Assembly (NCBI RefSeq): GCF_032062105.1
Contig: NW_026935377.1
Coordinates: 62,001 to 126,000 of the forward strand
DNA from: Saccostrea cucullata
Lineage: Eukaryota
Length of the DNA: 64,000 nucleotides
Reading direction: 5' to 3'
Shown here: positions 14,136 through 60,028 of the stretch, in pieces
Numbering within the stretch: the first letter of the stretch is position 1
Layout: every line of letters begins with the position of its first letter
Made by a program: the position numbers and the translations under genes
Notes under the pieces: model-generated
Seen by the model: only the letters and a program-made list of their open reading frames with translations
The model's database searches: none
What the model was told of the DNA's origin: nothing

Positions 14136-17100
14136 TTAGTGACTGCATCTACAACGGCCGTCGATACAATGTTCACGATCATGAGCATGTGGACATCTAT
14201 CGTGACAATCGTTTACGTTCGTGCAGGGTCCTGGAAATTAGAATTCACTTATTTCATTGTCATTCTCCATATTATAATTTTAAAACTAGATTGAAATTTC
14301 AGTATTTTTTATATCGTTCATAATACGTTATATGTTGAGTTTACGGAAAAAGAAAAAAAAAGTCTACCTCCACCGTGGGCTTCATGGGTGCATGTACACT
14401 CCCTGTTTACGCAGTGAAGTTCATATCCAGGAAAACATGAAGTCAGTGTACAGTCCGCATGATCGGAGCAAGTCTCGGCATATACTAAAAGTAAAAGAAG
14501 AGATTGAATGATGAAGGGTAAAAAATAATTGAAAATTTATTCAATCATTGTTCTTCAAATATCGTCTGTCTGTTAAGGTGAGGTTTCCATTGCGCAATAC
14601 TTCTAAATAAAATCAAGCGTATTTACTGTTTTAAAGCAACTTTTTTTTCAATTAATTAACACAAGTTAACAAAACTAAGAAATCACAGGTTGAAAAATTT
14701 AATTACAATTTTTTATAACTGATTTCTAAAACGATTTTTCAACTGGTAGGTAGATTGACGTCGTAATACTGTGTTTTCGACGTTGTCATAAACTGCAACT
14801 ATTAAGGTAGGATTCTTCTCTGGTGTCTGACTAGACGAAATATTCAATGTATATTTGCTGATATGTCTTATATATTTTAGGTGAAAGAGATTTAAAAGAC
14901 CTTTATTTTTCTTTCCTCATCACAATTGTACAACTTTACCATATGTGAAAATAAGAAAAAATTAAATATAGGGCGCATATAAAAATAATTTAAATATCCT
15001 AAAAATTTAAGAAAAATAGAGAAAATTCGGATTAGCCAAAATCCATTTTTGTTAAACTATTTGTGTCAGTTTGGTAATATCATCTCATAGACCTTATATG
15101 GTGATATCTTCTTATGCAAAAAGAAAAATATTTAATCTTTTGAAATAGAAGACAGTATCGCATGGTTGGATGCAGTCATTTTTATTCTTAATGTCCAGGG
15201 AAAAGGTAATGACCTTGACCTGACCTTGACTCTAATATTGAACGGTCAAAACTTATCTAACTGATACCATCACTTAGTAATATTGTCTTCTTGATTCTGT
15301 GAAAATTTCATTAATTTTTAAATACAAGAAATACAGTTTTGTGTGAGAAGAATCCCACCTTAAAGAAGGGAAAACAAAAAATGTTACAGAAAAAGTATCG
15401 AATAGATGCTTTTGAAATTTAAAACATGGAAATTTGAGAATCTCTTGATCATTTATATCATATTTTGTACCTATCCTTTATATTCCGCCATATTTTGTAG
15501 TACTCTGTAAAAACAGGATAAATCATTAAATTATAAATCTTCATTTTTATACCATATATAACTTACATTAACTTCAGTGTACTTGCAAATTTTGGGGGAA
15601 ATCTAGCACCCAGGTATATTTAATGGACCGTTTCAAAATACAGGTACATTTACTGCAGGATTATATAGGAAAATGCCAATTTGTAGCACTTTAAAGCAAA
15701 TTACACAAATACTACAATAGACTTTTTGTTCAAACTATAATATTTGATGAGTAATACTATATTGTACATTATATGAAAGAAACACAAAATTCTACCATCT
15801 TGTTTCCAAAGGGTCCATATAAAAATGCTAAAAAACAAGCTAATTCAGAGAATTTGTGTCCCCCGCTTAGGGAAAAAAGAAGACAATGCGCAGTTGGGGG
15901 GGGTCGGATTTCCCCACCCACTGAATTTGTATAATTATTTAATGTATACATGTATATTAATGCAAATAAAAAATGCCAATATGGATATGAAGATTTGATT
16001 GCTTATTCTTTATTATGTGCATAAGAAAATTCTTTTTATATAGCATATTTATCACACTAATGTAATGATGATTTTATGAGTTTTTACAAGCCAGACGTCA
16101 TAACTTTTACATTTTACATGCTGAATGCTATCATTTAGTGGAAAAAAGTATTTTAAAAAAATTATATTACTTCCGGGATTCGAACCCGGGAGTTCTTACA
16201 TGTCAAGCGAGAGACATACCACTACACCACGGAGCCGCTTCGTATTATCGGAAGTTATATGCAAACATGAGGTCACATACATCTATATATTCACGTTCGC
16301 TATTGTCACAATTTTACACAATGCATGATGTTTAATTTAGCCTTTATTAAACAGTTCTAATAAGAAAAAAAAGTCCACCAACAACCTGTATAGTGTTTCA
16401 CACAGACAGAATGTATAAATTTACAACCTTGAACATTGACCTTTTGACCTCAAAATCAATAGGGGTCTTCCTTAGGCCACAGATAGTTATGCAAAATTGC
16501 ATTGCGAAAGCTCAAAGGGTTCTCGAGGTATCGCGCGGAAACGAAAGTGTTATAACAGACAGAATTTATTGATTTATGACCTTGACCTTTGACCTATTGA
16601 CATCAATATCTATAGGGTTCTTCTTTAGGCCACAGGGAGTTGCTATGCAAAATTTCATTGCAAAAGTGCAAAGGGTTCTCGAGATATTGTGCGGAAACGA
16701 AAGCGTTACAGACAGACAGAAAGACGGACAGATGGATGGGCAGACCCAAATTAATATCCCTTACTTTCGGTGAAAGTGGGGACTATAACGAATTTTCCTG
16801 GTTTTATAGAGTACTACAAAATATGACGGTCACAAAGGATTTATTAAAACAAAATAAAAATAATGGAGAGATTCTCAATTTTTTATGTTCACAATTTCAA
16901 GAGCGTATGTTTATTACTTTTTCTACCATGACATTTTTCTTACCCCTTTCTTTGAGGGCTTCAATTTATCATAACGTCAAAAACACACTATAACGAAGTT
17001 AACCTACCTATCCGTTGCAAACTCGGTTAAACATAAGTTTTTTTTTTGTAAGGTGTCTAGTATTTTCTAGCTACCGAAAATGAATATGACTAAATACTAG

Positions 17101-17211
17101 CTATAAAGAAAGACGGATTTTTAAAGTAAAATGCATTTTGTTAAATAGCTTTGTAAAGAGAATCTATATACCTGCAACAACACAAATGGCTAGAATGAGG
17201 ATTTTTTTCAT
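14136..17211 (-). CDS. Cys-rich secreted peptide 1 (cvSI/I84 protease inhibitor-like), 3 exons, 83 aa
   Basis: Exons 17211-17172, 14484-14368, 14230-14136; GT-AG phase-1 introns. MKKILILAICVVAVYAETCSDHADCTLTSCFPGYELHCVNRECTCTHEAHGGGPCTNVNDCHDRCPHAHDREHCIDGRCRCSH*. AATAAA at 14123-14118. Family name is from recalled similarity, not a search. Confidence 0.9.
14806..15359. mobile_element. TTAA-flanked TIR element (Kolobok-like, non-autonomous) in intron 1 of gene 1
   Basis: TTAA-GGTAGGATTCTTCTC ... GAGAAGAATCCCACC-TTAA. Confidence 0.75.
16172..16237 (-). pseudogene. tRNA-like sequence (pseudo-tRNA or SINE head)
   Basis: A box TGGTGTAGTGG and B box GGTTCGAATCC, but the anticodon stem does not pair. 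Confidence 0.5.
16380..16790. mobile_element. Helentron-like element in intron 1 of peptide gene 1 (related copy at about 37570-38280)
   Basis: Two GACCTTTGACC-containing tandem units, GACA/GATG microsatellite, terminal hairpin CCCTTACTTTCGGTGAAAGTGGGG. Confidence 0.6.
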
Positions 17212-17277
17212 CGCTATATATATGTCCAATCGCAAAGTAATTTGAGAACTATGTCTTGTTAGTTAGATTGCACCAAA

Positions 17278-17350
17278 TATATACCGTCTTAAGATTTGAA
17301 GAAGGCAAGGGTCATTGATAGAAGACTAATAGAGCGCAGCGCATAGATAA
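17278..17350 (-). promoter_or_regulatory. Gene 1 promoter module (TATA, GGGTCA, AGATAA)
   Basis: TATATA 17278-17283; GGGTCA 17309; AGATAA 17345. Confidence 0.55.
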
Positions 17351-20063: not shown

Positions 20064-21444
20064 TTAATATATTACTGAAACAACAAATCAATTCTGAAAA
20101 AGTTTTCAGGTCTTTTCCTTCAAAATGAAGACCTTTCCATCATTTTCAATTTATTCAGAATAAGTCATTCAAGCATGAAATGCGCGGTATTCAATGTGTC
20201 GGCACGGCCAGGTGTGTTATAGGACCAAAGACATCCAAAAATATGAATTCAATGCTTATATTTACATTTTAAATTGACTCAAAACATTGTATATTTTGGT
20301 TTTCTTAGAGTATTGAAAATGCATATAGTTCCCACTATGTATTCGAATGCGCGGTGACAAGGTTTCGCGTGTGTTATAGAGATTTGAACACCGTGGATTT
20401 CTAAAGGATTTCATAAAGACCATTACACTGAATGTAAATATAAATAGTTAATCAGGACTAAAACGCGTACATCTAGAAATTTCAGGGGTGATATTAGGTG
20501 TTTAGGAGGAGCAAACATCCCCTTCGATTGGTCAACTGGCCAAATCCGTCGTGAATCCCATGAACTATCCAGGTAGGTGGGTCAGTCTGATGTAAAATTT
20601 AGCATTATAAAAAAAGACCCTACAATTGGTAGGAAACACACTAGCCACTTACCAACAAAAAGCTGAGTACGCCAACGAGACTATGCAAACTTTTGGGGTT
20701 AAAGTGCATAGTTTTCTATGCATTTTATAAATACTCGTATCCTTACAGAGTCAGTACAAAATCTAGTTCAAAAAGTTTTAATTTTTACTCTTTCAAACCC
20801 TTATTCCAAAAAACTATTCAAATTGTAGGAAATACTGATCAAACACATAAATGAGTTTTACAGTCAAATTAAATGCAATACATAAACAGAATGTGTAACA
20901 TAACTGTGGGAATGAAGGTAGTTTTACTTGTACTACATGTGTACTACTGGAAGGTCATCTGTATCAAAATGTTAAACATAGGTTGGGTTCAGAGCCCCAA
21001 AAGATGTAAACTGTATATGAAATATCAGTTTTATGACTCCTTGATATTTTTAATGAAAAACGACAGAAAAGTGTTATAAAGATTATATATTTAGGTTGAG
21101 AGAAAAAAAAAGAATATTAGAAGCTACATTCTATGTAATTTTAAAAAAATTACCAACAAATGAGTTAGAATTTTTCCTTTTTTGGATATGAAGATTCCTA
21201 ACAAAGGAGATACGTCTTCGTCAGATATAACACGTCCATACTCACCAGCCTCGCTTACACACCCTACCTAATACATGTAAACACACGGATAACCGAGACT
21301 AAAACCGATATTTAACGCACAAATGACTTCTAGATCGGTAGACATATGTACTTTTGTCGTTATTGGTTTTGTAGATGTGTAACAATTAATTGATGAACCT
21401 TTTGATTTCAGGAGTTTGAAAATGATGCTACTTGTAAGGTGAAA

Positions 21445-22240
21445 CAAATGGAGATAACGAACAGTATTCAAGTTCAAAAGTCCATAAAACAATACAAAAT
21501 AGAAGCAGAGCAAACACGGACCTCCAAAACAACGGAAGTGGAATCAGGTGCCATGGAGGTGAAAGCATCTCCTGCTGACCGGTCACAACAGCCGTGTTCT
21601 CCTTGTCATGATCAGGAAATAACGGAAAAATCCGTCGTCAATTCAGTTTATAAGTAATAGACTAACAATTAGTATAAAAAAGTCAGGCAGCATTTGACTC
21701 AATGATAAATTATATTTGCTGACAAGGTCATTGTATCGACCATAAAACTTACGAAATTATGACTCTAAACGAGACAGCTGATATTCTTGTTTCGTCAACT
21801 TGTTTGTCAATACCTCGTTTTAGAAATTGTTCAAGTATGCTCTTGTATATCGAATCAACTGAGATATATAAACTCCGTATGCAGGTGATGAAGGTATATT
21901 GCTGCATAGGTAAGGAAAATTAACGATAGAAAAGTTTTAAAGTCATCGCACGTATCATAGAGGTTGGTTGTTAGATTACCACTAACGTCTTTTTCAAGTA
22001 AAATATCCAAATATGAAACAGATGAGTCAGACTCTGTGGTATCTTTTATTTCAAGCTCACCTGGATATATCGTATCGACAAAAGAATGGAAATTGTCATT
22101 ATTAATTGACAATTCGTCGTCGATATATATCTAATGTCGAGTTGAAGGCCACAGTGTTTTCTTCATTTCACGCATAAGATTTTGCACAAATTCTGCTTGT
22201 TCATATGAATACAAAAATATGTCTGCTAATAACGGAAGGT
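21445..22240 (-). mobile_element. Degenerate Penelope-like retroelement 3' fragment
   Basis: RT C-terminal region IKDTTESDSSVSYLDILLEKDVSGNLTT plus the conserved non-coding end; frameshifted. Confidence 0.75.
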
Positions 22241-27093: not shown

Positions 27094-28634
27094 ATACTTT
27101 CGAATAAAGTTTATCGTCCTTGTTTTAGTCAGGGTGCACCTGAATTTTGATTTTAGATTCTACATTCAAAGTCAGATCCCTTTTACTGCATGTCTTTAGA
27201 AATCATTGTTATGATTAAAGCTTCCCTGAAAAAAGGTATCAACAAAAACGCAATTCTGATAAGAGACCAATATATAGTTATTTTTTGGGTCTAGATATAT
27301 AAATAAAATTAATTTCTAAAACAAAAAAAAATACAGAGTAGCTTTCAGACCTTAAACCAACCTAGATATATCAAAAAAGTGCAGTTAAGGTCATCAGGAA
27401 GAAGACACACAGAACAGTGACCAGATAAAGGGTCATACTCTAAAATGTAGAACCAGCTACGATACAAGAAAACACGAAATATGAGTCGTGTTGTTCCAAA
27501 TACCAGACAGAAAATTTAGTCATGTCTGAGAGGAGAACCACGTTTTTGTAGTTGATTGTTTCAGATTTTTTTTATATGCTTAGATTTGGTTTGTCTTATA
27601 ATTTTAATACAGTGTAGACATGTATATCTAATTTTTGTTGTTCGTTCTCGAAAAACTCATGGAGTATTTAAAGCTTGAAGCAGAAATTCAAAAAAAAAAA
27701 TAGTTTATCAAATTGTGAGCTGAGAAAACATGGACCAATGACAAGGTGAGTATATTTACGAGTTCATTTCTTATTGAAAATGCAACTGTCAAATATCAAA
27801 AGCTTGGACCTAAATTTATCGTGCGGAATTGTGGTATATAAAAGTTAAAAAGCTGTAAGTTTTAACGCTGTTGATTTTGGTAAAATTTTGTGAATTCAAA
27901 CTTTTCCAAATGTTCCTTGGATTTTTTAAGTATCTACGTCTAATTTACACAAGTTCAGGAATATATTGTTATTCGGTACTGAAGTACTGTTGAATTTTCT
28001 CCTTCACTACTGTTAATTTCTGAATGAGGAGTAAAGAAAGAGACTTGGTAAAACAATTATTGGAACCCTGTATATATCTTTGTTTGTAAGGATTTTTAAG
28101 AATCCTTTTAAGATTTCTTTTAGAAATATAGATAAAGTAATTCAAATTCATTTTGATTGTTTAGAATATCAGGATTCATTCCTTGATATCTGTTCAAAAC
28201 CTCTGGTAACACATGCTGATTTTTGTCTAAGAACATTTATTGGTAGTATAATTTTAAATTTAATATATCTTGAAAAATTATCAGTAAGTATGTCCTTAAA
28301 TTGATTAAACCAAGAATAATGTAAGCCCTCTGCAAAGTGGAAACATATATCTAATTGAATGTTTTCTTTACAAAGCCTACAAGGGCCTTCAGAGGACTGT
28401 AAATCAAAAATATAGTGATAGATGAAATATTGAGATAATGAACAGTATTTAAGCTCAAAAGTTCAATAAACAATACAAGATAATGCTAAATTGTCATAGA
28501 ACTTACGTAATGATGACTCTAAACGAGACTGCTGATATTCTCGTATTTACAATGCGTCGTCGATATATCGAAACGACGAAATATGAAATGTTAAGAAAAG
28601 CACACACAAGTTAAACCTTATTTTTTTAATTTCT

Positions 28635-29880
28635 TTAAAAATGAGTACATCTGCATCTTCCATCAATACAGTGATGCTGACGTCCATGATCACATCGTCC
28701 TTGACAATCATCGGCCCTGACGCAATCTGTAAGAAAATCAAGAAGATGAAGAAAACAGATATTGATCGATTTAAAAAAATCCCTGGACAGGGCATATACT
28801 CCAACCCCAGGTAATATCAGGTACGGGATCAGGCACCTAGGATCAGTAACTGATTCTTATTTGTTTATTCTTATTGTCAGAAATTTCACTAATTCCTATT
28901 TTGATATAATGAAAGGTATACCTCCATCGCCACTGGCTGCTGTGGTACACGTGCACTGATCATTGACACAATGAACTGTGGACCCCCCGGTACATGTTGT
29001 GAGTGTACAGTCCCTCGTGTCGTCACACCTTTCTGCGGATACTGTAAAACATTGTATGTAATGGCAGTTGATTATAGAACAAATCATGCTGTAATACATT
29101 AAAACTGTATCTAACAGTAGTTAATTAAAATTATATCTAACAGTAGTTAATTAAAATTGTATCTAACAGCAGTTTAGTAAAATTGTATCCAACAGCAGTT
29201 TATTTTCAAGGATTCATACTGTAAAACATTAAAATTGTATCTTAAAGCAGTTAATTATAAAACAATTAAATCATGCTGTTAAACATTAAAATTGTATATA
29301 ACAGCAGTTAGTTATAGAACAAATCATGCTCTAATACATTAATATTGTATTTTAAAACATTTAATTAACAACGAATCATACTGTAAAATTTCATAATATT
29401 GTATTTGACGGCACTTATTAATCAAACTACGGAGGCTCATTAAGGACCAATCGGAAATATTTTTGTGAATTTGATATGAAAAATTGGCGAATTTGTTATA
29501 ATAAATTTAATTCGATATAACAGTTTCTTTAAATTAGTTATGACGAATTTAATCTAAAATAACTTTTTATTGATATCGTTATATCAAAAAAAAAAATTAT
29601 AATAAATTTAATTCGATTAAACCAGTTCTAAAATTAGTTAAAATACATTTTAAATTCGTTTATACAAATTCTATTTGTTATTACAAAGTCAACATTCAGG
29701 GCCTACAGAATTTACAAATTTAAAGAAATCATTTTTGCAATATATACTTTTAGACTTCTTGATCTGCAGCCAATTTGTTTGCCTTCTCCTGGTTTTTCAT
29801 TCTGTGAAAACATATTGCACAAAATTATCACAATACAAACCTGCAACAACAACCAATGCGAGAATAAAAACAACCTTCAT
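28635..29880 (-). CDS. Cys-rich secreted peptide 3 (cvSI/I84-like), 3 exons, 83 aa
   Basis: Exons 29880-29841, 29041-28922, 28726-28635. MKVVFILALVVVAVSAERCDDTRDCTLTTCTGGSTVHCVNDQCTCTTAASGDGDCVRADDCQGRCDHGRQHHCIDGRCRCTHF*. Confidence 0.92.
29075..29400. repeat. Degenerate ~30-bp minisatellite in intron 1 of gene 3
   Basis: Repeated AAAATTGTATCTAACAGCAGTTAATT-like units. Confidence 0.7.
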
Positions 29881-29948
29881 ATTTCCTCTTTTCTTCACTG
29901 ATTGTTGTGAACAAAGATAATTTAATTATTAATTTCTTCTCAAGTATA

Positions 29949-30025
29949 TTTATATATATATACCTTGAAATAATTTATCTTGCAAAGGTCAGGAAATCAG
30001 AAAGTTTAAGGCCGTGCAGAGATAA
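29949..30025 (-). promoter_or_regulatory. Gene 3 promoter module
   Basis: TATA run 29949-29962; CAAAGGTCA (AGGTCA at 29986); AGATAA 30020. Confidence 0.6.
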
Positions 30026-31437
30026 AATCAATCACGAAACATAATGTCGTGCTTCTCGAAAAGCAGGAATAAAAACTATGGCATGTATATATATGAGGTA
30101 CTTATCTGTAGTTTTTCATATTATGAACATATCTTCAATATTTGTAATGTAAACAAGGAATAAAAGCAAGGAACTGCAGTAGTCGATTAAGGTCTAGTGT
30201 AAATATATAAAATTTATTTCGCTATATTTATATATGAAAATGATAACGTTTATGTACTCGACATCGATAGCCAAACGAGTTACTTTATCTGCCAATGGAA
30301 AGAAAGCATTTTCTATTCAAATAGAAAAAGAACTGTAAAAAAAATTGTGTTTTTCTTTGACTAAATCATAAAAAAAATGCGATGTGATTTTTTCCTTTTT
30401 TTCCCCCTCCAATTTGAATGAATGGAAAATGAAGACCCGAACAGCATTGAAATTCAGTGTGATAATCATAACCTTTTGATTTATATGTAGCACTTCAGTC
30501 GACAGGTGCTGTCGCACTTAATATTTGTATTTCATTTTTCCGAATCGGTCGCTTGGCGCAGTGGTTAAGGCGTTTGCTCTATATTAAAAAATTCTCAAAA
30601 GGGGCGCTTCACAAAATAATTGTCCAATTTTAGTGAATTTTTGTAAAAAAAAAAAAAAAAAAAGCTATTATTTTCAATTCCCATATGAACTGTACTGTAA
30701 AGTATCTGCTTTAAGCAGATTAGAATTTAAGAAAGACTACCTGATCTTTATGGAATGGTTTCAGCTGACAAAGCTCTTTGTTTGCAAGGCTTATTTTAAC
30801 CATTTCATTTTAGAAAAGAAGCGAGAATATATTCCTAATCTTGTAACCCAATTTATTCTCTCAGTCCCTATTCCTCAGAGTCACGTTTTGAGTTTAAATA
30901 CTTTAATAATTCCGGTAAACGTGAGTGAACTTAAGTTTCAAATCTATACTGAAATTCGATATCTCATAAAAATATAAAATCAATACATGGAACGCTACAG
31001 AAATGCATACCTTGTGGATGATAAATTGAGATAACGAATGGCATTTAAAATCAAAAGTCCATTGAAACCATAGAAAGCGTGAGCAGAGCAAACAGTGCTG
31101 TTGATATCATTGGCTCTCATACTAAATTTGATACTTATAGTCCAGATAAATAGATAGATGACAGGAAATACTTACTCTTTCCAGGCACATGAACTCACCT
31201 CATTTAGAATCTTAAAGATTTAATAAAGTTCTCAAATTTGGGGAATAATAGTTGTATTCTAGGCATATTGTGGAAAATAAGTTTTCTTATCTAGATATGT
31301 CATGGTCATTATTTATCAAAACTTTTTAAGATATGAATTATTTTCAGTTCTTCAGTTTTATTTCTATAATTTCTACAGGTCAATATACAATGAATCAGAC
31401 ATGTGACAACTCGTTAAGGTAGACGAATTTATTTCTT

Positions 31438-32782
31438 CTAAAAATGTGTACATCTGCATCGACCATCAATACAATGGTGCTGGCGTCCATGATCACAACG
31501 TCCGTGACAGTCATTGGCCATGGTGCAAGCTGTGGTAAAAAAAAATGAATTAATTTACCAAATTATTCAATGAAGTGCTATGCGGAGAGAGCTTTTAAAT
31601 TACTAAATAAAATATCTATTTAAAGCATAAGTATGTCGTAAGTATAAATTTTTGAAAATTTTGAAGGAAACTAGACGACTTTGGGATTTTTAAAAAGATT
31701 TTTATATTTAAAAAAAAAATCTTAACCCTCTGAAACATCAATCTAGGATTAAACTTGTCTATCGATTGAGAGAAAACTGCTAAAAATACTAAGAAAATAG
31801 GGACGAGTCGGGTGCTTATACAATAGAAAGTTGGTAAAAATTGCAGATTCTAAGATTTCTTATTTCATAGTTTCAATTATTTTCAGCAATACTAAATACC
31901 CAGTATGTCGTATCAAGTCACATACCTCCATCACCACTTGCTGCTGTGGTACACGTGCACGTATGTCCAATACAATGGAGGGTTGATCCGCCCCCGCATG
32001 TAGTGGCTGAACAGTCATCCGTGTCATCACATCTTTCAGCGATGACTGAAAGACATTGAATTTCAAAACAGAGGCTTAGCAATTGCATAGCTGTTTATTT
32101 CATGTCTACAGGCCTAAAATAACTTGAAACGTAAATTAATTTTCTTGTAATTATCTGGTGATTTAACTAATATTTCGTTTGACTTTCAATACACTCACTA
32201 ACAACATGACATGCGCTTTAACATTGATTCAATAGACTTAATTGGAATTCTTTGGAAAATATAACTAGCATTATCATTTCAATAAAGTAATATTCAAACT
32301 TAAGATCAAGAGAATATTGAACAATGACTACAAAAAAGTTCAACTTGTATATTCCACACGATATATGAATGTATCCCTTCAGATAGGCATACCACACAAA
32401 TATGCTTAATTAACTAAATTACAAACTAATTAATGCAAATGCATGATAGAAAAGGAAATTTATCTTTTTCACAATTAAAGAATTTTTTAAATTTAAAAAT
32501 GAAACAATCCAAGATACAAATACATATTTAAATAAATTCTTTAAATGAAGAAAGAAATTAATGAGTGTACATTAAAAAAAAATCTTTATGTCATGGAAAC
32601 CATATTTGCAATGTTATTACAATGCTGCAAAAAAACTTCTTTGTAAATGTTCAAATCTTATTCAGTATTGTACCTTCTTCTGAATTGTCTTCTGAGAAAA
32701 CAATTTGTAAATATTAATCTACATGTAAGTAAACACAATTACCTCCGACAACAACGACAGCGAGAATAAAGATGGCCCTCAT
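31438..32782 (-). CDS. Cys-rich secreted peptide 4 (cvSI/I84-like), 3 exons, 83 aa
   Basis: Exons 32782-32743, 32045-31926, 31529-31438. MRAIFILAVVVVGVIAERCDDTDDCSATTCGGGSTLHCIGHTCTCTTAASGDGACTMANDCHGRCDHGRQHHCIDGRCRCTHF*. Confidence 0.92.
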
Positions 32783-32840
32783 GGTGATCTTTGCTTCACT
32801 AAATGTTGTGAATGATTATATATATGGCCAATTCTTTTCA

Positions 32841-32916
32841 CTTATATATCTTCTCTGAACTAAATTATCATGCAAAGGTCATCATTTCAGCACATAACTT
32901 TGTCATGTGAAGATAA
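32841..32916 (-). promoter_or_regulatory. Gene 4 promoter module
   Basis: TATATAAG near 32841; CAAAGGTCA (AGGTCA at 32876); AGATAA 32911. Confidence 0.6.
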
Positions 32917-33109
32917 AAATAAGCACGAAACGTAATGGCGTGTTGCTGGAAAAGCAGGACATGAATAAAGGTCTTCAGACGTTCAGCTTTGGTGGTGATT
33001 AAATGGGTCCATGACTGTTTTATCAGTAACATGCATCATTTGAGAAATCGTTTGCATGTAGAGCAAGCCCTTGCATATTAAGTCTTCTGAAGACATAAAT
33101 TTCCTATAT

Positions 33110-33840
33110 GAAGGATATGGAGATAACGAACAGTATTCAATCTCAAAGTCCATAAAACAATTCAAAATAGGAGCAGGGCAAACACGGACCTCCAAAACAT
33201 CAGAGGTTGGATCAGGTGCCATGGAGGAGTGAGCATCCCCTGCTGACCGGTCACACCCGCCATGTGCTCCTTGTCATTATCAGGAAATAACGGAAAAATC
33301 CGTCGTCAGTTCAATGTATAAATAATGGACTAACAATTAGTATCAAAAACGTCAGTAGCATATGACTCATTGATAAATTGTATTTTGCTGACAAGGTCAT
33401 TGTATCGCCATAGAATTTACGAAATGATTACTTTAAACGAGACGGCTGATATTCTTGTTTCATCAACTTGTTTGTCAATAATTCACCTCGTTTTAGAAAT
33501 TGTTCATACGTAGAGCATGCTCTAGCGTATCGAATCAACAGAGATATATATACTCCGTATGAAGGTAATGAAGGTATATTGCTGCACAAGTAAGGGAAGC
33601 TGACGATAGAAAAGTTTAAGTCATTACGTTTATCATATAGTTTGGTTGTTAGATTACCATTAACGTCTTTTTCAAGTAAAATATTCAAGTATGAAACAGA
33701 TGTGTCAGACTCTGTGGTATCTTTAATTTTATCTCAAGCTCACCGAGATATATCGTATCGACGTAGGAATGGAAATTACCATTGTTAATTGACAATACGT
33801 CGTCGATATATCTAAAAGTCGAGTTGAAGGCCACAGCAAG
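33110..33840 (-). mobile_element. Penelope-like retroelement 3' fragment
   Basis: FRYIDD motif and LTTKLYDKRNDLNFSIVSFPYLCSNIP...LIRYARAC; same family as 21445-22240. Confidence 0.8.
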
Positions 33841-34952
33841 TATATAGGTGATAAGGGTTTAATGCTGCGTAAATGAAAGAAATGAATGAAAAGTTGAAGT
33901 TATCCCATTAATCATAAAGAGCGATCCAATCAGTGAAAGTTTAGGCTTAACTGTTTATAATAATAAATAAAATACATAACTTAAATATGAATAAATATCA
34001 CCCACTGGACTCTTAATCAGCTAAGCTCAGAAAAAAACCCCGCTCATTCTCAATAAAAAATTCAAGTCATTTACGTTTTTGAAATCAGTAAACTTTGCAG
34101 GTTAATTTTTTGAAGGCAAAACTTTTGAGCAATAATATATTTTACTTGAGACATTTCCGTCTTATCAATAAATAGAGCTCTCGGCGGGTGTGAAAGGTCA
34201 ACGAGGGATGCTTACTCCTCTAAGGTACCTCAGAGAATTTTTAGGATTGATAGGGCAGAACAAAATAATTTTATAATTAATTATAAAATCTTTAATAATC
34301 GAATGTCATCAACGCAATTTGAAATGTGAAACCCTCCCAAATGGAAAAGAAATCTAACAAAATTGTTTCAAAATATCTTCAAACCCCTACCAAAACATAC
34401 TTTTATATTTTCTTTGTATGTTTTGAAAGTGTTGCATATAACGAAACATCAATGCAACACTTTACAGGATGGGGGTGGCATGGTATTTTGGTAATGTTTC
34501 ATTTCAATGTTGGTGTTTTATTAATGTTTCATCACACTCTGCAAAATGAAATTGCAGTTTGAAAGTATTTCGTTACACTTGTCTGCATCAAAGTAATATT
34601 TTTTAGCATTTCATTTGATTAACAGACATTTTTAGGGTTGAATTATCTCGGAGCTGTAAAAGCTTCAAAGAACAACATGTCTGTTTACAACCTGTGTTAG
34701 ACTAGAATTTGCGCCAATTTTCAAACCACCAGCACTAGGTCAGAGAGAAATAAAGAGATTGGTGAAAGGACATACAAAGTGTTAGTATATATATTGATCC
34801 CTGATTGGAAAAAGCAAAATCAGGATGAATCTGGATATAAAAGAGGTATTTATTGCATGACATAAAGTTCTTTTTACTGGACTACAGTAACCTTCAATCT
34901 GTGAATGTGGATGTGTATATGGCCTGTTTTTATTAGGTTTTAATTTATTCTA

Positions 34953-40808: not shown

Positions 40809-40883
40809 CTTATATATCTTCTCTGAAAAAATTATCTTGAAAAGGTCAGATATTTCGCACATAATTCTGTCATGTGAAGATAA
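40809..40883 (-). promoter_or_regulatory. Gene 5 promoter module
   Basis: TATATAAG near 40809; AGGTCA 40843; AGATAA 40878. Confidence 0.6.
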
Positions 40884-41859: not shown

Positions 41860-42880
41860 ATGAAGGTCATTTTAACGACTATAGGATTTATGAAATACTG
41901 ACTTTTAACAAGCTTTTTGACTTCCCTGAAATATCAACTTTTATGTTAGTGTCCTGCCTTGGTTTAAAAATGTAATCCTCCTCAAAATATGCTCTTGAAT
42001 ATCGAATAAGTTGGGAAATATTTAAATAGGGAAAGTTTACGATGGAAAAGCTGGTCGTCATAAACTTTTGCATTTATTTAAAATAAGTGTTTGTAGTCAG
42101 TAAAACTTCTTCAAATGAAAAAGATGAACGAGAACCTTCAGGAGTGCTGTGCAACAATATGTTCTAGAAATTGTGTAATGAAATATATAGAGATAACAAC
42201 AGTATTCAAGCTTCAAAATAGGAGTAGAGCAAACAAGGACCTCCAAAACAGTAGAGGTGGGATCAGGTGCCATTGAAGAGTGTGCATTACTTGCCGACCG
42301 GTCATACCCGCCGTGCTCTCCTTTTCATGATCGGGAAATAACGGAAAAATCCGTCGTCAATTCAGTACATAAATAATTAGTATGAAAAACGTCAGTCAGC
42401 ATTTGACTCAATGATAAATTGTATCTGCTGACAAGACTTTTCAACTTTATATCCAACAATATCCTACGATAAATTAAAGTTGAGGCTTTTTGGCAGCATT
42501 GAAAGCTTCTTTTTCAATAAAAATGGAACTCATAAATCTAATTACTTTATCGTTGGTTGTTTACAAAATTACTTTAAAAAAAACATTCTGAGTCTACACA
42601 CAAGTACTCTGAAGTTGATATTAAAAAGATGCTTGGGTTTCTGATGCACAATGGTTTTCGGAGACCAGGCCTTCCAACAGTTTATTGAAATTCCCAATTC
42701 CGCTCCGTTATCAGCAGGCCTGTTTTTATATTCATGTAAAGCACAATACGTTCAAAAAATCTTATAGATGAATAAAAGAATACGCTGTGACTTCCAACTT
42801 AACTTTTAGATATATCGACGACGTATTATCAATTAACAATATCGACGACGTAATGTCGACGTAATGTCAATTAACAATAC
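41860..42880. mobile_element. Rearranged Penelope-like fragments in both orientations
   Basis: Minus-strand FSIVNFPYL / SQLIRYSRA and 3' end (42185-42435), followed by a plus-strand RT piece ending FRYIDD (about 42806). Confidence 0.65.
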
Positions 42881-45936: not shown

Positions 45937-47011
45937 TTAAAAATGAGTGCATCTACATCTGCCATCAATGCAATGGTGACGTCCACCGTGGTCACATCTT
46001 CCATGGCAGTCGTCAGCCATGACGCATCCTGCAACAACAATAAAGAAACATTATTTAAACTTTTCATAAAACAAAGGTACCTTTACTCTGTTGGTTAGAC
46101 TTTAAAAAATAGGGAAACACACAGAGTAAATTCGGTACGAACCTCCGTCGCCAGTGCCAGCTGTGGTACAGGTACATTGGTGGTTAACACAGTGGAGCTC
46201 AGAGCCGGAAGCACAGGAAGTGGTGGAGGTGGAGCAACTGGATGTGTCTCGGCACATCTCAGCAGAAACTGATAGGATATCAAAATTAAATGTTGATACA
46301 GATTTATTTTAGGTGGTAAGTATGCATACGCATACATGTATATATATTTCTCTATATCACGTTTGGAAAGAATATAACATTGTGCGAAAGCTTCTTTGAC
46401 ACAAAAATATCAGAAAATTTCCTATAAATATCCAAAGTCATGCAGGAAAATTTATGAACAGTTTAGGAAACTTTGCAGAACTACGTAAAGATGCATTTTA
46501 TACACAAAACAACATTATGATATCTAAAACACACTGTTGTCTTTGTTCAGAATTTGCGGTTTAAAAAATTGAGAGCTTTAAAAAAAATTTTTAAAAAATT
46601 ATATATATTTCTCTATATCAAGTTTCGAAAATTTCCTATAATTATCCAAAATCATGCAAGAAAATTTAGGAACAGTTTAGGAGACTTTGCAGAACTACAT
46701 AAAGATGCGTTTTATACACAAAACAATATATATACATGATATCTAAAACACACTGTTGTCTTTGTTCAGAATTTGCAGTCTTTATATTGTTTATTTAAAT
46801 AAGCTTAATTAAGTTTCGTGAAAATGAAAATTTTTGCTCACGCACAGATCAAATATAGAGTTTATAACGAACATAATATACAAATACAATCTTATCCATT
46901 TTATTCAATTAATATAATTATAATAGTCGTCTTTTCATTTATATATAATATTTGTAGAAAAAACAATTTACCTGCTACAATAACGACGGCCAAAACAATC
47001 AGAGTTCTCAT
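45937..47011 (-). CDS. Cys-rich secreted peptide 6 (cvSI/I84-like), 3 exons, 85 aa
   Basis: Exons 47011-46972, 46268-46143, 46028-45937. MRTLIVLAVVIVAVSAEMCRDTSSCSTSTTSCASGSELHCVNHQCTCTTAGTGDGGCVMADDCHGRCDHGGRHHCIDGRCRCTHF*. Confidence 0.92.
46340..46780. repeat. Local ~200-bp tandem duplication in intron 1 of gene 6
   Basis: TATATATTTCTCTATATCA...ATCTAAAACACACTGTTGTCTTTGTTCAGAATTTGC occurs twice. Confidence 0.75.
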
Positions 47012-47074
47012 GATGGTGAGTTTGGACTGATTTGAAGATTAGATGTCAACTATTGTTATCGTTAGAAGCGGGCC

Positions 47075-47139
47075 TTTTATATAAGGAGAGCATTCAGAAA
47101 AGTCAGGCACACAGTTCCAAAATTCAAACCCATAGATAA
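47075..47139 (-). promoter_or_regulatory. Gene 6 promoter module
   Basis: TATATAAAA near 47075-47083; AAGTCA 47100; AGATAA 47134. Confidence 0.55.
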
Positions 47140-49050: not shown

Positions 49051-51987
49051 TTACAAGATAGTACATCGGCAATGTCCGTCAATACAGTGATGCTGGCGAC
49101 CAAAGGTGCACCTGTCGTGACAATCTGACGCCATGGTGCATGTTGCTAAAAATAGATGATTTGAATAGATCATAATTAAATGAGCCATAATTATACATTA
49201 TCAAGTATTTTTTTTATATAATTTTAAATTATGCTTAATAACTCTTTTATGTTGAATAATTGATGAAAAGAATATTACATACATTATAATCCCATTATCT
49301 ACAGTTACACCATATTGAAATCATAATGACGTCATTCTATATTTAGACAGTACAGTATTAAGGCCTACCTCCGCCTGCTGTCGTGCAGGTACACGTGTGG
49401 AAGATACAGTGTATTTCGGACCCAGTTCCACAGGTTGTGGTTGTGCAGTCGTCGTGTCGCCTGCAGTTCTCCGAATAGACTGAAACACAAGTGTTAAACA
49501 ATCATTCAATGTCATTCAGGTATAGAAGTTTTTATGCGTTTATGACAATCTTCTTTATCTGTTGAATTACTGCGTAAAGGGTAGTATAAGATGATCGGAT
49601 CAATCATGAAGGGGATACATAATTGCACAATATTACTTCTACAATGTAGTAAACATGGAAGGCAGATGCCCAGAATTGAATAAAATGCAATGAAGCTCAT
49701 TAATGATGTACTTTTATATCAATAATTTAAAACTTAAAATTGTAACATATACAAACAAAAAGATCTATAGAACAAAATGTAAGTTATATATTTTTGAATT
49801 TAAAAAAAAAATATTAAGGTCTAGTTTATCTGCAAACTTATGTAAAGGAGAAAGTCCGAAAACTGTCATTTCTGTGAGAGAAAGAACTGTTTGAAGCCCG
49901 AAGGGATCCTACTTAAAACATTTTCTCTATTGTTAACTTGATAAACCGTCCCAGTTGATGACTATGGTTACGTAAAACACTTGCTTGTGCAGAGAGTGAG
50001 GGGAGAAACAAAAGAGATGAAAATATTGCTATATTGTTTAACTTGAAAGATTCAGGTAAATTTAAATAATAACTCACTTGATCTCTGATTACTTCCAATG
50101 AAAAGCTTCAAGAGAGAAGCTCATCTGATGGAGAAAGTGATATATATTTCTCCAAAACATACATGTCAAAGGGTGTTAAATACTCTATTTAAAGTAGGTA
50201 GACACAAGCGAAACCTGCAGGTATGCAGAATCTGAAGTTGGTGTTCATGCTTGACCAAAACTATAATAAATCATTGTGAGAAGGATATGGAGATGGCGAA
50301 CAGTATTCAACATCAAAGTCCATAAACAATACAAAATAGGAGCAGAGCAAACACGGACCTCCAAAACATCAGAGGTGGTATCAGGTGCCATGGAGGAGTG
50401 AGCATCTCCTGCTGACCGGTCACACCCGACGTGTGCTCCTTGTCATGATCGAAAAATAACGGAAAAATCCGTCGTCAATTCAGTGTATAAATAATGGACT
50501 AAAAATTAGTAAGAAAAACGTCAGTCAGCATTTGACTTAATGATAAATTGTATCTGCTGACAAGTTCATTTTATCGACCATACATCTTAGGAAATGATGA
50601 CTTTAAACGAGACTGCTGATATTCTTGTTTCATCAACTCGCTTGTCAATAATTTACCTCGTTTTAGAAATTGCTCATACGTAGAGCATGCTCTTGCGTAT
50701 CGAATCATCTGAAATGTATACACTCCGTATGCAGGTGATGAAGGTATAATGCTGCATAAGTAAGGGATGTTGACGATAGAAAAGTTAAAGTCATCGCATT
50801 TATCATATAGCTTGGTTGTTAGATTACCATTGACGTCTTTTTCAAGTAAAATATCCAAGTATGAAACAAATATATCAGACTTTGTGGTATATTTTAATGG
50901 TCTCCTGGATATAAAGAATAATAAGGATTTAAGGGACACTATACGAAACGTTCTTTGAGAACAAAAGCGGCGACCCGCTTGTATGAAAGTGAGATTGAGG
51001 AACAGCTAATAACTTAGAAAAACGGGCCACAAATCTGTTACAGTTTGAACCTATAATTGAACCAACAACGAACAGCAACAGACAGTAAATGAAATAATTC
51101 TTGGAAATATGGGGGATTCAAAGGATGGCAAGTGTATGAAAAAGATAAAAATTTGTGATCCCTGCCCCAAAAATAATTCCACCTTCAGTGCATCTAGTGA
51201 GATTATCATTTAATGAGGAAATATGCCTTTCTCTTTTAAAATCTAAATTGCTGTTGGATACATATATTTTTAAACGTTCATTAATTTGATCTACTACGTC
51301 AGGCTTTCATGTACAAATATTGTGAAGAGGATAAGACGTATATTTGTTTATTAATAAACAAACTTCTGGATGTGGATGTTGTACATTTATTTTACATCAG
51401 AATATTACACATGTGTCTTCTTGGCAATAGGAATTGCCGTTTCCAAAAATGATATACTGTTGAACATTTCATATACAAATGTTTTATATTCATGAATAAA
51501 TGTGTATGAAATAGAAAATTCATTTTCTAATAAAGTTCAGAAAATATTTTGTATTTTCAACATTTAAAACGTGTACATTAAGTTACCTGTAATTGTACAT
51601 TAAGTTGGTTAAACGCTGTCGATATTTACAATTCGTTTAAGAATTATATGTACAAGTGATCAGAGGTTGATATTGAAAATATTTGAGTTTCTCATTAACC
51701 ATATGACTTAAGTTTTCGGAGTTGGGTCTTCCAATAATCTGTTGAAATTCCAGCGGTTTCTAACTGTGTTGCAATATAAGCATATCTGTTTTTGTACTCC
51801 TATGAAGTAGAATTCGCTCAAAAACTTAAGGTATGTTCTAAAATTTATATGCAATGCCCATCTAAAAATTTTCTTCATATTTTGAAGTTACTAAAACATT
51901 TCTAATATTTTGTCATCTTTACACTTCAAAATAATTAAGAAACTTACCTGCTGCGATCAGGACAGCCAAAACAAATAAGGTTTTCAT
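49051..51987 (-). CDS. Cys-rich secreted peptide 7 (cvSI/I84-like), 3 exons, 81 aa
   Basis: Exons 51987-51948, 49479-49369, 49145-49051. MKTLFVLAVLIAAVYSENCRRHDDCTTTTCGTGSEIHCIFHTCTCTTAGGATCTMASDCHDRCTFGRQHHCIDGHCRCTIL*. Confidence 0.9.
50280..50892 (-). mobile_element. Penelope-like retroelement 3' fragment in intron 1 of gene 7
   Basis: SYLDILLEKDVNGNLTTKLYDK...PAYGVY...IRYARAC. Confidence 0.8.
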
Positions 51988-54562: not shown

Positions 54563-55777
54563 CTAGTTTGCTTTACTGCAGTTTTTGAATAACTTTTTGA
54601 TCTCCGTTGTAAATTGATGGTCGAGAAAAGCATAGATGAATGGATTAACGATATTGTTAATGATGTACATTCTATAAACAAACAAAATACCAGCTCTTGT
54701 AGAATCAGAAAATGTCTCCCAAAATTCTAAATGTATCGCTTCAAGCAGCATGAGGATGACCTTTGGGATGTAGCAGATGAGGAAAAAGATACTGATTAGC
54801 ATGAACATCAGGGTAAACTTATAGACGACCCTCTTGTTGGTTTGTTCTTTTCTTAGTTTTGCACTTGATTTATACAGAACTGGGTTACCTCCAGGTGGCA
54901 CATATGTTGGACTATTCAATGTACCTGTTGACTGATGTGTATTAGAGGCAACTGAGCTTATTAAACTGTCTGCTTCAATAGAATTAATTCCAATTTCCGA
55001 GTCACTTTGCATGTTCTCACTACTGGAGACTCCAGTTTGTAAGTTTAAGTCAATTGCGTTGGGAAGGTTTTCAGTGGTCTCATTTCCTTTTTTCTTGCGA
55101 ACGGTTTTCTTGCGTTTGAAATGTTTAAGGATCGTATATCCTATTCTTGAGTAAAGACAAATAAGTGCAACAATAACAGATACGGTGGTTAGAACTGTAG
55201 TACTTCCAAAGATCAAAGATGCTGTTTTATTGACCGTTTTCAACCTGCTGCAATGGTATCCAAAAAGTCCTTCTTCCTTTTTAGAGAAGGGTGTTGATCC
55301 ATAGAAATAAGCCATTGGTAAGGCTAAGACAAATGCTACCAGTACTCCCAAGCAAAGGGCCAGTCTTTTCCATTTAAGTGTCATCTGTTTTCTGAAAGGT
55401 GTGCATACCTTTAAATATCTGTGCACTGCGATGATTAGAAGAAATAGAACCGAAGTAAAAGCTGGAAACGATCCAAGGAACCGGAAGAATTTACATAATA
55501 CTGTGTCACTGAATGTTACCTGCATCATGTTTAAAGCTATTGCAAAGCCAGCACAAGAAATGGAGGCTACTAGATCCACCACAGCAAGAAAAGGAATGAA
55601 ATACCTCTCCTCGTTATTGCCTTTCATCTTAAAACCGTAAATAAAAATAACAGTAACATTTCCAAGCAGACCGATAATGATGTATAAAGACAAAATCACG
55701 TTATTAACAACTAGTCCTCTTGCAAGCTCATTATTCCATTTTTCCAATTTCTCTAAAGAAGAAGTGGAGTTATTCAT
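54563..55777 (-). CDS. Intronless class A (rhodopsin-like) GPCR, orphan, peptide-receptor-like, 404 aa
   Basis: Seven hydrophobic segments; TM1 GLLGN, TM2 LAVVD, TM3 IAVHRY (DRY variant), TM6 FLICYIP, TM7 NPFIY; N-terminal N-glycosylation sequons (NNS/NST); long Ser-rich third intracellular loop. Confidence 0.92.
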   Translation of the reverse strand: MNNSTSSLEKLEKWNNELARGLVVNNVILSLYIIIGLLGNVTVIFIYGFKMKGNNEERYFIPFLAVVDLVASISCAGFAIALNMMQVTFSDTVLCKFFRFLGSFPAFTSVLFLLIIAVHRYLKVCTPFRKQMTLKWKRLALCLGVLVAFVLALPMAYFYGSTPFSKKEEGLFGYHCSRLKTVNKTASLIFGSTTVLTTVSVIVALICLYSRIGYTILKHFKRKKTVRKKKGNETTENLPNAIDLNLQTGVSSSENMQSDSEIGINSIEADSLISSVASNTHQSTGTLNSPTYVPPGGNPVLYKSSAKLRKEQTNKRVVYKFTLMFMLISIFFLICYIPKVILMLLEAIHLEFWETFSDSTRAGILFVYRMYIINNIVNPFIYAFLDHQFTTEIKKLFKNCSKAN

Positions 55778-56439
55778 TGCTATAGACTTATTACTGAAGT
55801 AAATGCAGGCCCTGATTCACCGATTACTCATTTATTTCGGATACCTCGCTGTGTGGTTTCCTTGTGGAGGAGGAAGCATGCAGGAAGTTTTTTTTATTTA
55901 AACGTTACGAAACATACATATAACAAAAAGTATATATAATGCAGTTTTGTACAGCTGTTGCACCTATAAATATCTGTTCTGGTATCAATGATGAAAATTA
56001 TTTGGATATGTGTGAACGTACACATTGTTTTACATTTTGAAAACTACTTAATATATATGTTTTGAAAATACAAGACCTATAATTCTTTTCGTGCTGACAA
56101 TCTACTGCAACAAAATTCTAAATCATCTGCGATGTTTTGTTGTATTTTTGAAAACATAATAAGGTTTTAAAATTTCCCTTTTCTTGCAGTGGAGTGGAGA
56201 AATGGGGGTTTAAAACGCTTTCATGATATGATATCTGAATTTCAAAACTCCGCTGACATTTTTCTGAATAGTATTTTGCAAACAAAGATACATAGCGGGT
56301 TCCAGTATATCCTCCTCAACCAAGCCCCTTTATTTACTCCTCACTAAGATATTCAAAGTAGTGAAGGAGAAACTTCAAGACAACAATATATTCAAGAAGT
56401 AAGGTAAATCAGATGTGGATCCTTAAAAATTCCAATTAT

Positions 56440-57312
56440 TTAAAAAGAAAAACATTTGGATTGTACACACAAATACACTTAAGTTGATATCAAAAAGATG
56501 CTTGAGTTTTTGATTGACAATATTTATGTGGTTTTTGGGGACCATGACTTTCAATAATCTATTTGAATTCCCAAAGATACCAATTGTTAGATAACCTGTT
56601 ATTAGCAGACCTATTTCTGTATTCATAGGAAGCAGACTTTGTTCAAAATCTTACACGTAAAAAGAAGAAAATACTTGCTTTGGCCCTCAACTCGACATTT
56701 AGATATATCGACGATTTTCCATTCTTATGTTGATACGATATATTCCCGTTGAACTTGGGATAAAAGATACCACAGAGTCTGACACATCCGTTTCATATTT
56801 GGATATTTTACTTGAAAAAGACGTCAATGGTAATCTAACAACCAAGCTCTATGATAAACGTAATGACTTTACAATCGTCAACTTTCCTTACTTATGCAGC
56901 AATATACCTTCATCACCTGCAAACAGAGTTTATATATCTCTGTTGAATCGATACACAGGAGCATACTCTACGTATGAACAATTTCTAAAACGAGGTAAAT
57001 TTTTGACAAATAAGTTGATGAGCAAGATCAGCTTTCTCGTTTTGAATCATCATTTTGTAAGTTCGTTCTATGGTCGATACAATGACCCTGTCAACAAATA
57101 CAATTTATCATGAGTCAAATGCTTACTAACATATAACTGTTAGTCCATTATTTATAAACTGAATTAACGACGGATTTTTTTCGTTATTTCCCGATCATGA
57201 CAAGGAGCATACGGCGAGTGTGACCGGTCGGTAGGAGATGCTCACTCCTCCATGGCATCTGATCCCACATCTGATGTTTTGGAGGTCCATGTTTACTCTG
57301 CTCATATTTTGT
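56440..57312 (+). mobile_element. Penelope-like retroelement fragment, plus strand
   Basis: FRYIDD at about 56698; ORF 56727-57113 with the same RT C-terminal motifs and the same 3' non-coding end. Confidence 0.8.
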
Positions 57313-58852
57313 GAACTTTTGATCTGCACACCCTCATAGTCAAATGGAGGCCGAATACGACATAATTTAAATTACAAAAATCAGCATTCTCAACTTTTTC
57401 TAGACGACTGAGGACATTCTGTAGATGTGCAATTAGGTCTTGGAACTTAATTTTTTACAGTAGGAATGGTAGTCAAAAAAGACACATTTCTTTATTTACA
57501 AAATATTAGTTCCCCAAACTCCACTTTAATTTAACGCAGTATCCGGTTCTTCTTTTGCAAGATGATTGATGGAATTCTGTAAATTCTGTTAATGTGCGGT
57601 TAGATTTTAGATTTTACATATTCAAAGTGGGAATCGTATTCAAAAAAGATACTCTTCTTTATTTTACAAAATATTGGTTCTCAAAATTTCACTTTTATGC
57701 AGTTACCGGCTCAGTTTGACTGGGGTAAGCAGAAGATGTGTGCAAACGGTCATGTAAATTTTGTTTTCACTCTGGTGATTAAATGGAAATTGGACGAAAA
57801 TTTTAAAACCATTAATTATCTACAATCTTCATATATTTTACACAATATATATATTCATAAACATATTTTCAGTTTCTAAAACAAGGTATGTTATTGACAC
57901 GTAAGCTGATGAATCAAGAAGACCATGAACACACAGCAAGTTTTACACCAGTACATTGCACTTACTTTTGGACCCCTAATGGCTAGCAAACACATATTCC
58001 GTTGGGGGTTAAGAAAATGTTCCGATCGTAATAATTATTACGATATGGACAATTACTTACCTCGAAAGGAAAAAAGCACTTTGGGTGTGCTTCTTCACAA
58101 TCCAATCAGATCTTTATCTATTGAGAGTTAATTGTCAAAAACCTGTAAACCAATTCTTCCGTACAAGTCTGTTGATCTTTTCCTGACCCACTGATCCCTC
58201 AAACGACCTAGACCAGCACAAAAGCTTTAAGCTACACAGTAAAGGGATTATCTGTTTTGTTAAACTTCATTGCCATTTGATCTAATTTGTTAGGTACCAA
58301 GTAAACGTTAAGCAAATATAATTTTATCTCTTGGTGTAGATTTTACAGGCATGCAAAAGTTGCATCCGGTTAGTAAATCAGCGAAAGTGAAAGCATTTTC
58401 TGCTCCATAAATTTTTATAATATATAATTATATTTTGGAACACTTGTAGCTCAGAATACTTCCTTGGATGAATCCTATTACTATAACTATATAATATTAA
58501 TATCCTTGGAAATATCTACATCAATACACATGCATCGAAATTCAGAATTCAAAATAGTCATATTGTCCCTCAACTTACAAAATTTTGTGGATATTAAACT
58601 ACTTTCTTCCTTCGCCGTCATTTATTGTCATATCAATATGTAATTTAATCATTCTTTAACCAAATGTTTGTTTTCTACTCTAAAAGAATTATAGTGTCAT
58701 GAAATCATGGATGTGGCCAAAATATTTCAGGCCACAAATGAAAACTCTTAAGATAGAAAGTCAAATCTTTTGCTATCTAAATATAATTTATTTCTCTAAA
58801 AAATGTTTTGTTTTGTTTTTTAAAAAGTACATCGACAATGTAGGTTGCTATG

Positions 58853-60028
58853 TTAAAAGTGGGTACATCGGCAATGGCCGTCAATACAGTGATGCTGGCG
58901 ACCAAAAGAACACCTGTCATGGCAGTCGGACAACGTGGTGCATGTTGCTAAAAAAGAATATTTGTTATCTTAAATAAATTGACTAGCAAAATTGATTACT
59001 TTGATACAGTTTTCTTTACGGTCAGATGATACAAACAAAGAATTGATGCCTGGATTGGTATATATTCATGGATTGGTATATATTCTTTGACCTTATTTCA
59101 TTGCAAAATTGATGCAAACAATAAATTTCTAGAATATCTTTAAATTGTAAAATTTCTGCGACATTCAAAATTCTACCCTTCTGAGACCATCCTTATTATT
59201 CTATAAAAATATTTTTCACTTCATTTTCCATCTTTCTGCAATTTTGAATAAAACTTACGCGGTGAAACTTATTCATTTTATTCATTAAAATATGACCTAA
59301 GTTATTATTTTCAAAATTTTTGACAAAAAGTTGTTTGTATCATCTGTCCTTAATATTTGTTTTTGTTTAAACCGTGAATTAATAAGTTTTTAAAAAATCG
59401 AACCACCTATCACAAGTGTTCTTAAATAAAACTGTATCTTCTTGCTATTGCCTAACCTCCGCTACTGGCAGCCATTGTGCACGTGCACGTGTGGAAGATG
59501 CAGTGTATCTCGGCCCCAGTACCACATATTGTGTTTTTACATTCTTCGTGTCGGTTGCATGTCTCAGAGTATACTGAAAAAATAGCGCATCAACATTTTA
59601 TTTGTTTTATCTTTTTTAAGTTGCTGGGATATTTTAAACGAGACCGTAAATATCCCTGCGTCGCGGACTTACTTGTCTATAGCCTGCCTCGTTTTAAGGA
59701 TGTTCATACGTAGATACATTCTCAACTGACAGATAAACTCCTTTATATGTGAAATTCTTATGTTGCTTTACTAAGAGAATTTATGTTTTTACAAAGTGTT
59801 GTTTCCAAGGAATTTTCAAAAAGAAAATTGACAAAGAAGTGGAAAAAGAGCTACATTGTTTTCTATAAAAAAAGAAAGAAAAAAGATCTACTTACTGGCA
59901 GAGTGTAGACTATCTTCTCATTTTTAAGAAAATATGATGGCCTCCTTTTACAAATAGCAGTATTTATCATAGCAATTCACATACATACCTGCTACAATCA
60001 GGAGAGCGAAAGCAAAGATGATTCTCAT
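58853..60028 (-). CDS. Cys-rich secreted peptide 8 (cvSI/I84-like), 3 exons, 83 aa
   Basis: Exons 60028-59989, 59573-59457, 58947-58853. MRIIFAFALLIVAVYSETCNRHEECKNTICGTGAEIHCIFHTCTCTMAASSGATCTTLSDCHDRCSFGRQHHCIDGHCRCTHF*. Confidence 0.92.
59020..59349. mobile_element. About 330-bp MITE (TTAA at right end) in intron 2 of gene 8
   Basis: TIR CAGATGATACAAAC / GTTTGTATCATCTG; second copy at 62299-62623. Confidence 0.75.

Follow-up and report, generated by a model that had tools for sequence, protein, structure and literature searches.

I84 inhibitors are defined by a signal peptide, a length of about 70 residues and a 12-cysteine array, C-x5-8-C-x4-5-C-x7-9-C-x4-CTC-x6-23-C-x5-7-C-x3-6-C-x5-8-C-x4-C-x-C, and by genes of three exons and two phase-1 introns in which exons 2 and 3 each encode six of the cysteines (PMC9198434). 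One of them, cvSI-1, inactivates the protease of Perkinsus marinus, family members are reported to be induced by pathogens, and I84 inhibitors have been linked to oyster resistance against Perkinsus and bacteria (PMC9198434, PMC4133350). Tandem I84 arrays with this exon layout have been published for the razor clam, with clusters of seven genes in 52 kb, four in 23 kb and two in 95 kb, and have been mentioned for the Pacific oyster (PMC9198434). The stretch considered here, referred to as the window, comprises 64,000 nucleotides of the Saccostrea cucullata contig NW_026935377.1 (positions 62,001 to 126,000, forward strand) and contains no N. It holds eight genes of an array that, judged from sequence, is probably a set of nine tandem I84 (cvSI-like) genes encoding secreted inhibitors of serine proteases.

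A six-frame scan for cysteine-rich stretches combined with a motif search placed eight intact three-exon genes on the minus strand between 14136 and 60028 of the window, numbered from g1 (60028) to g8 (14136), and the six-cysteine motif occurs 16 times in the window as against zero times in each of 20 shuffles. The exons of g1 lie at 60028-59989, 59573-59457 and 58947-58853 (83 residues, identical to XP_062580712.1, 'uncharacterized LOC134242623'), those of g2 at 51987-51948, 49479-49369 and 49145-49051 (81 residues, XP_062580719.1, with a dispersed repeat in intron 1), and those of g3 at 47011-46972, 46268-46143 and 46028-45937 (85 residues, XP_062580708.1, with a two-residue insertion between Cys2 and Cys3). 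The five remaining genes encode 83 residues each: g4 at 40760-40721, 40365-40246 and 39981-39890 (XP_062580707.1), g5 at 32782-32743, 32045-31926 and 31529-31438 (XP_062580705.1, nearest paralogue g4 at a synonymous divergence, dS, of 0.31), g6 at 29880-29841, 29041-28922 and 28726-28635 (XP_062580703.1), g7 at 23727-23688, 22725-22606 and 22486-22395 (XP_062580702.1), and g8, the most divergent copy, at 17211-17172, 14484-14368 and 14230-14136. Exon 1 contributes 40 coding nucleotides in all eight genes; from g1 to g8, exon 2 measures 117, 111, 126, 120, 120, 120, 120 and 117 nucleotides and exon 3 measures 95, 95, 92, 92, 92, 92, 92 and 95. All 16 introns are GT-AG and in phase 1, the reading frames are open, and each precursor of 81-85 residues carries 12 cysteines, all beyond residue 16, which leaves mature parts of 65-69 residues. 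Joined coding sequences built from the window coordinates served for the frame checks, for comparison with fetched proteins and for the estimates of selection. Shorter exon-2 donors (108-111 nucleotides) preserve the frame in six genes; they were rejected because the conserved GAG/GT donor reproduces the RefSeq proteins.

An earlier sequence-only reading of this DNA had described these eight co-oriented genes, with their exon sizes (40, 111-126 and 92-95 nucleotides), GT-AG introns, open frames, 12 mature cysteines and mature lengths after residue 16, and all of this was recovered in place. Its array of eight is complete for the window but one gene short overall, as a ninth, g9 (XP_062580706.1, contig C17514:58871-60461, minus strand), lies about 1.5-3.1 kb to the left of the window, with about 15.7 kb of repeats between it and g8; moreover, the gene of a G-protein-coupled receptor (GPCR) interrupts the series. 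With g9, the whole array amounts to nine genes in about 63 kb on one strand, and no further copy or pseudogene besides g9 was found within the 114 kb scanned.

The array genes almost certainly belong to I84. Exon 1 supplies the bulk of the predicted signal, six cysteines come from each of the other two exons and both introns are in phase 1, which is the I84 layout. The published cysteine array is fitted by seven of the eight genes and the C-T-C element is present in all eight; g3 departs from the array by a single residue (x6 between Cys2 and Cys3), and its relatives in other oysters do likewise. The mature peptides have masses of 6.9-7.4 kDa and isoelectric points (pI) of 5.6-6.5, in line with the size (about 70 residues, 7-9 kDa) and acidity of the family. 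By inspection, the signal region shows a basic start, a hydrophobic core and small residues at -3/-1, followed by an invariant Glu17. Homology searches were made with single exons and then with the public proteins that these returned. A profile of seven window proteins scored 35.7 bits against scSI-2 (ATY73924.1), 23.9 against mgSI-2 (UBF40523.1), 29.1 against mmSI-1 (UBF40520.1) and 32.8 against hdhSI-1 (QPM65700.1), all four being listed in PMC9198434, and none of 1000 cysteine-preserving shuffles reached these scores, so that the likeness to I84 exceeds what cysteine spacing alone would give. A profile search with cluster representatives returned 125 matches, among them scSI-2, mgSI-2 and mmSI-1; hdhSI-1 was obtained from a separate homologue search, and the automatic name given by NCBI is 'Cvsi-2-like'. 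Neither cvSI-1 nor cvSI-2 itself was recognised among the matches of these searches. No I84 model matched in Pfam, where Nodulin_late and Toxin_2 appeared only below curated cut-offs, and no ESM Atlas feature exceeded 0.80. The similarity to named members speaks against a new family, and the I84 assignment already made by the sequence-only reading is borne out by cysteine array, C-T-C element, exon layout, size, pI and profile scores alike. Within I84, the array genes form a subgroup that is distinct from cvSI-1/2 and oyster-wide.

That reading had also called the array hidden and had supposed that small-gene annotation would under-call it. Neither idea survives, since the spliced models of g1-g7 are identical to S. 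cucullata RefSeq proteins, which excludes a hidden or unannotated array; the array is real and for the most part already annotated. For g8, no identical protein was retrieved by a homologue search that was lossy, missing two of its own query sequences; its counterpart in S. echinata, XP_061170232.1, is 80% identical and stands in the syntenic place. A second RefSeq isoform of g5, XP_062580704.1 (31438-32088, minus strand), starts inside intron 1 without the normal signal exon and is probably an annotation of intron-retaining reads.

Elsewhere in the genome, contig C4330 (161.4-174.4 kb) carries three genes, one of them annotated, that belong to another I84 subgroup, marked by a longer Cys8-Cys9 loop, and exon matches occur on about a dozen other contigs, including C21028, C23227, C14049, C1181, C14419, C13895, C14567, C10957 and C22688. 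These matches suggest roughly 30 I84 candidates genome-wide, about 20 of them on contigs other than that of the array. Two kinds of odd entries were seen among the proteins. Magallana gigas K1QCB2 (P0023), named 'Teneurin-2', has 121 residues and three six-cysteine modules; it represents an I84 gene with three modules or else a fused model, and the name is wrong in both cases. P0077, P0079, P0146 and similar entries are unnamed, secreted-looking proteins of 385-400 residues that end in four six-cysteine modules of similar spacing, and may be chance cysteine matches.

The two halves of the mature peptide resemble each other. Module 1, encoded by exon 2, aligns with module 2, encoded by exon 3, across all six cysteines, and the two module profiles match at 95% probability in hhalign, with an E-value flattered by cysteine richness. 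As exon 2 lies between two phase-1 introns, an old exon duplication would be a simple origin of the modules; the razor clam study also noted two modules, stressing their difference (PMC9198434). AlphaFold2 predicts a very short helix, of only 3-4 residues, and a beta-hairpin per module, with confidence scores (predicted local distance difference test, pLDDT) of 83 and 87; no disulfide pairs were seen. The nearest solved folds to the model are plant defensins, drosomycin, scorpion short toxins, NCR13 and ToPI1, all of them weak matches (no Foldseek E below 1.3; VIA Z scores of 4.1 and 2.6). The spacing of the cysteine-stabilized alpha-beta (CS-alpha-beta) fold, C-x3-C plus C-x-C, is present in module 2, module 1 having C-x4-C and the cysteine spacing of chickpea NCR13 (E 0.004; Z 2.6). 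No significant CS-alpha-beta match to structures or Pfam was obtained (Foldseek, VIA; Toxin_2 and Nodulin_late sub-threshold for window pieces), sequence and fold searches of the PDB gave weak matches only and turned up no I84 structure, and no paper tying cvSI to this fold was found among those searched.

These spacings and nearest folds would suit I84 homologues that act as tandem defensin-like antimicrobial or membrane- or channel-binding peptides and not as protease inhibitors. Typical defensins are cationic. The array peptides are acidic, with 5-7 Lys/Arg against 7-11 Asp/Glu, and the fold matches stay weak (every Foldseek E exceeds 1 and no Z is higher than 4.1), which makes a defensin-like role improbable. 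The fold itself does not decide function, given that ToPI1 (6mrq), a trypsin inhibitor, shows that a CS-alpha-beta fold can carry a serine-protease inhibitor (PMC10788795). A venom toxin was set aside, the fold resemblance being weak and nothing more. It is conceivable, though rather doubtful, that I84 as a whole consists of two homologous CS-alpha-beta-like modules derived by a phase-1/phase-1 exon duplication, and that this conserved oyster subgroup acts as two-headed molecules or does something other than inhibit subtilisins.

The genes are maintained by purifying selection, as had been proposed from the sequence. Of the 28 paralogue pairs, 17 have a saturated dS, and the other 11 give ratios of non-synonymous to synonymous divergence (dN/dS) of 0.09-0.32. 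In comparisons with S. echinata orthologues over both modules, six pairs have ratios of non-synonymous to synonymous differences per site (pN/pS) of 0.04-0.12 and g8 has 0.35, uncorrected values that overestimate the ratio. Outside the cysteines, pN is 0.40 in module 1 versus 0.25 in module 2. No sign of positive selection was found across whole mature peptides; a few module-1 pairs give values above 1, which come from about 20 codons and are not reliable. It is hardly credible that the copies are chance or pseudogene remnants that are not expressed: the RefSeq XP records are predictions and a search for RNA runs, made for 28500-32900 of the window, listed none, as such an explanation would allow, but it is opposed by eight open frames with canonical splice sites at all 16 junctions, by a dN/dS far under 1 although dS is near saturation, and by orthologues that are intact in S. 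echinata.

Low orthologue ratios, 0.04-0.12 in six of seven pairs, would also suit a housekeeping role in which the peptides hold in check serine proteases that the oyster itself makes, in digestion or plasma, with no pathogen enzyme as target. Razor clam I84 genes are expressed mainly in the digestive gland and do not respond significantly to stress by heat or ammonia (PMC9198434), and a GATA-like upstream site, described below, would fit expression in the gut. The reported pathogen induction of family members and the inactivation of the Perkinsus protease by cvSI-1 argue against an exclusively internal target, which is given a low probability here; the two roles are compatible and not mutually exclusive.

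The 91 kb fetched from S. echinata contain the locus in the order g1, GPCR, g2, g3, one g4/g5-like gene, g6, two g7-like genes, g8 and g9. Lineage-specific changes are small: g4 and g5 together match one S. echinata gene, and two g7-like genes are found there. Ostrea edulis and three species of Crassostrea also have close relatives, so that all five other oyster species seen have close members. The conserved order and these oyster-wide relatives indicate that the array is old and stable, with local gains. Two S. echinata RefSeq proteins, XP_061170233.1 (L021:10001-17943) and XP_061169972.1 (L022:10001-22963), join exons of two neighbouring paralogues, the switch in XP_061170233.1 falling inside exon 2, and are likely chimeric annotations.

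Protease inhibition is the probable function of the array copies, as far as their sequences indicate, and the subtilisin-inhibiting and host-defence role would be carried over by analogy from cvSI-1/2. The proposed model is that the precursor would be secreted and cut after residue 16, before Glu17, and that the mature peptide would fold as a pair of homologous modules with three disulfides apiece, each module encoded by its own exon and the two connected by a flexible linker of 7-9 residues. It would then bind and block serine proteases, most likely microbial enzymes of the subtilisin type, in the gut or plasma, probably by means of an exposed disulfide-braced loop, and variable loops, most of them in module 1, would give the copies different target ranges. 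Small disulfide-rich inhibitors usually act by way of a substrate-like loop. For the array peptides, the exposed loop is a tentative proposal; the most variable exposed positions, 40-42 (hairpin turn of module 1) and 69-70 (module 2), are candidates only.

Several points weigh against protease inhibition by an I84 battery. No reactive site could be identified in the peptides; the link to the assayed cvSI-1 and cvSI-2 runs via other named members and the automatic NCBI name; and the identity to the four named members, 31-46%, is modest, about 18 points of it being due to cysteines. Orthologues are strongly conserved, which suits fixed targets more than a rapid arms race, and the tree is poorly resolved and too short to settle deeper orthology. 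Another function that could be read from the peptides is the binding of Zn or Cu by His and Cys, each mature peptide having 5-9 His and module 2 a conserved His-His-Cys; it is very unlikely, as the predicted signal peptide and fixed cysteine spacing point to disulfides and AlphaFold predicts a compact hairpin fold (pLDDT 83).

The upstream DNA of g3-g8 shares three elements, counted from the ATG: TTATCT at -123 to -145, TGAC(C/T) at -88 to -111 and a TATA-like element at -56 to -82. On the minus strand, this GATA-like/TGAC(C/T)/TATA triple occupies 47011-47139 before g3 and starts at 40883 (g4), 32916 (g5), 30025 (g6), 23861 (g7) and 17350 (g8). It has six matches on both strands of the 114 kb, all before g3-g8, a count that is partly circular because the pattern was derived from these genes. 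It precedes three of the seven S. echinata genes for which exon 1 was fetched and none of four genes in the O. edulis and C. angulata loci. The sites may correspond to GATA and nuclear-receptor elements.

The non-family neighbour between g1 and g2 is an intronless gene of 404 residues for a rhodopsin-family GPCR (54563-55777, minus strand; PF00001, E 1.7e-32). Its S. echinata orthologue, in the same place, is only 79% identical, whereas most inhibitor orthologues on either side exceed that value. An abundant dispersed repeat, 0.6-0.75 kb long, occurs in g2 intron 1 and at four spacer places (21440-22233, 33109-33843, 42214-42435, 50280-50913 and 56598-57312), and at least 40 further copies, at 90-95% identity, lie in other parts of the genome; related copies were seen in the S. 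echinata locus at other positions. The heavy insertion of transposable elements into introns that had been claimed holds only in part: the repeat load is real but uneven, 14 of the 16 introns measuring 114-962 nucleotides and two 2.5-2.7 kb. Left of the genes, two arrays of one 47-bp unit (1882-4243 and 10862-11666), in opposite orientation and 95-97% complementary, enclose a reverse-transcriptase open reading frame (5382-7148, minus strand, PF00078) and a 28/83-bp satellite (7287-9848); together they are possibly a composite or nested mobile element. At the other end, a Thr-rich open frame without Pfam match (63224-63970, minus strand) probably represents exons of the next gene.

As the genes are in RefSeq and both family and tandem expansion have been published, the general picture is unchanged; the complete nine-gene locus, with orthologues assigned, can serve breeding and immunity studies in Saccostrea. 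Compared with described I84 members (cvSI-1, cvSI-2, scSI, mgSI, mmSI and hdhSI), the array products share a predicted signal peptide, the length of about 70 residues, the 12 cysteines with C-T-C and an acidic pI, and the genes share the three exons, two phase-1 introns and six cysteines per coding exon of the razor clam genes and cvSI-1. They differ in a predicted signal of 16 residues instead of 17-19, in the six residues between Cys2 and Cys3 of g3, and in lacking the Gly-rich C-terminal tail of scSI-2 and mmSI-1. The CS-alpha-beta peptides (plant defensins, alpha-KTx scorpion toxins and ToPI1) and NCR13 have in common with the predicted model a six-cysteine module with a short helix and a beta-hairpin, and the former also the C-x3-C and C-x-C of module 2, whereas the tandem pair of modules, the C-x4-C of module 1 and matches below significance make this a resemblance and not membership. 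The closest relatives compared have proteins 57-95% identical, and the S. echinata locus has the same gene order including the GPCR, but a different local copy number at g4/g5 and g7. The razor clam clusters are likewise tandem and of the same gene structure, with Ka/Ks (non-synonymous to synonymous substitution) of 0.16-0.57 there (PMC9198434) versus 0.09-0.32 here; unlike them, the Saccostrea array has nine genes in about 63 kb, all intact and on one strand, as against two likely dead copies in the clam, encloses a GPCR gene, and shows an upstream layout shared by six genes, whereas no motif shared by all genes emerged from the clam study.

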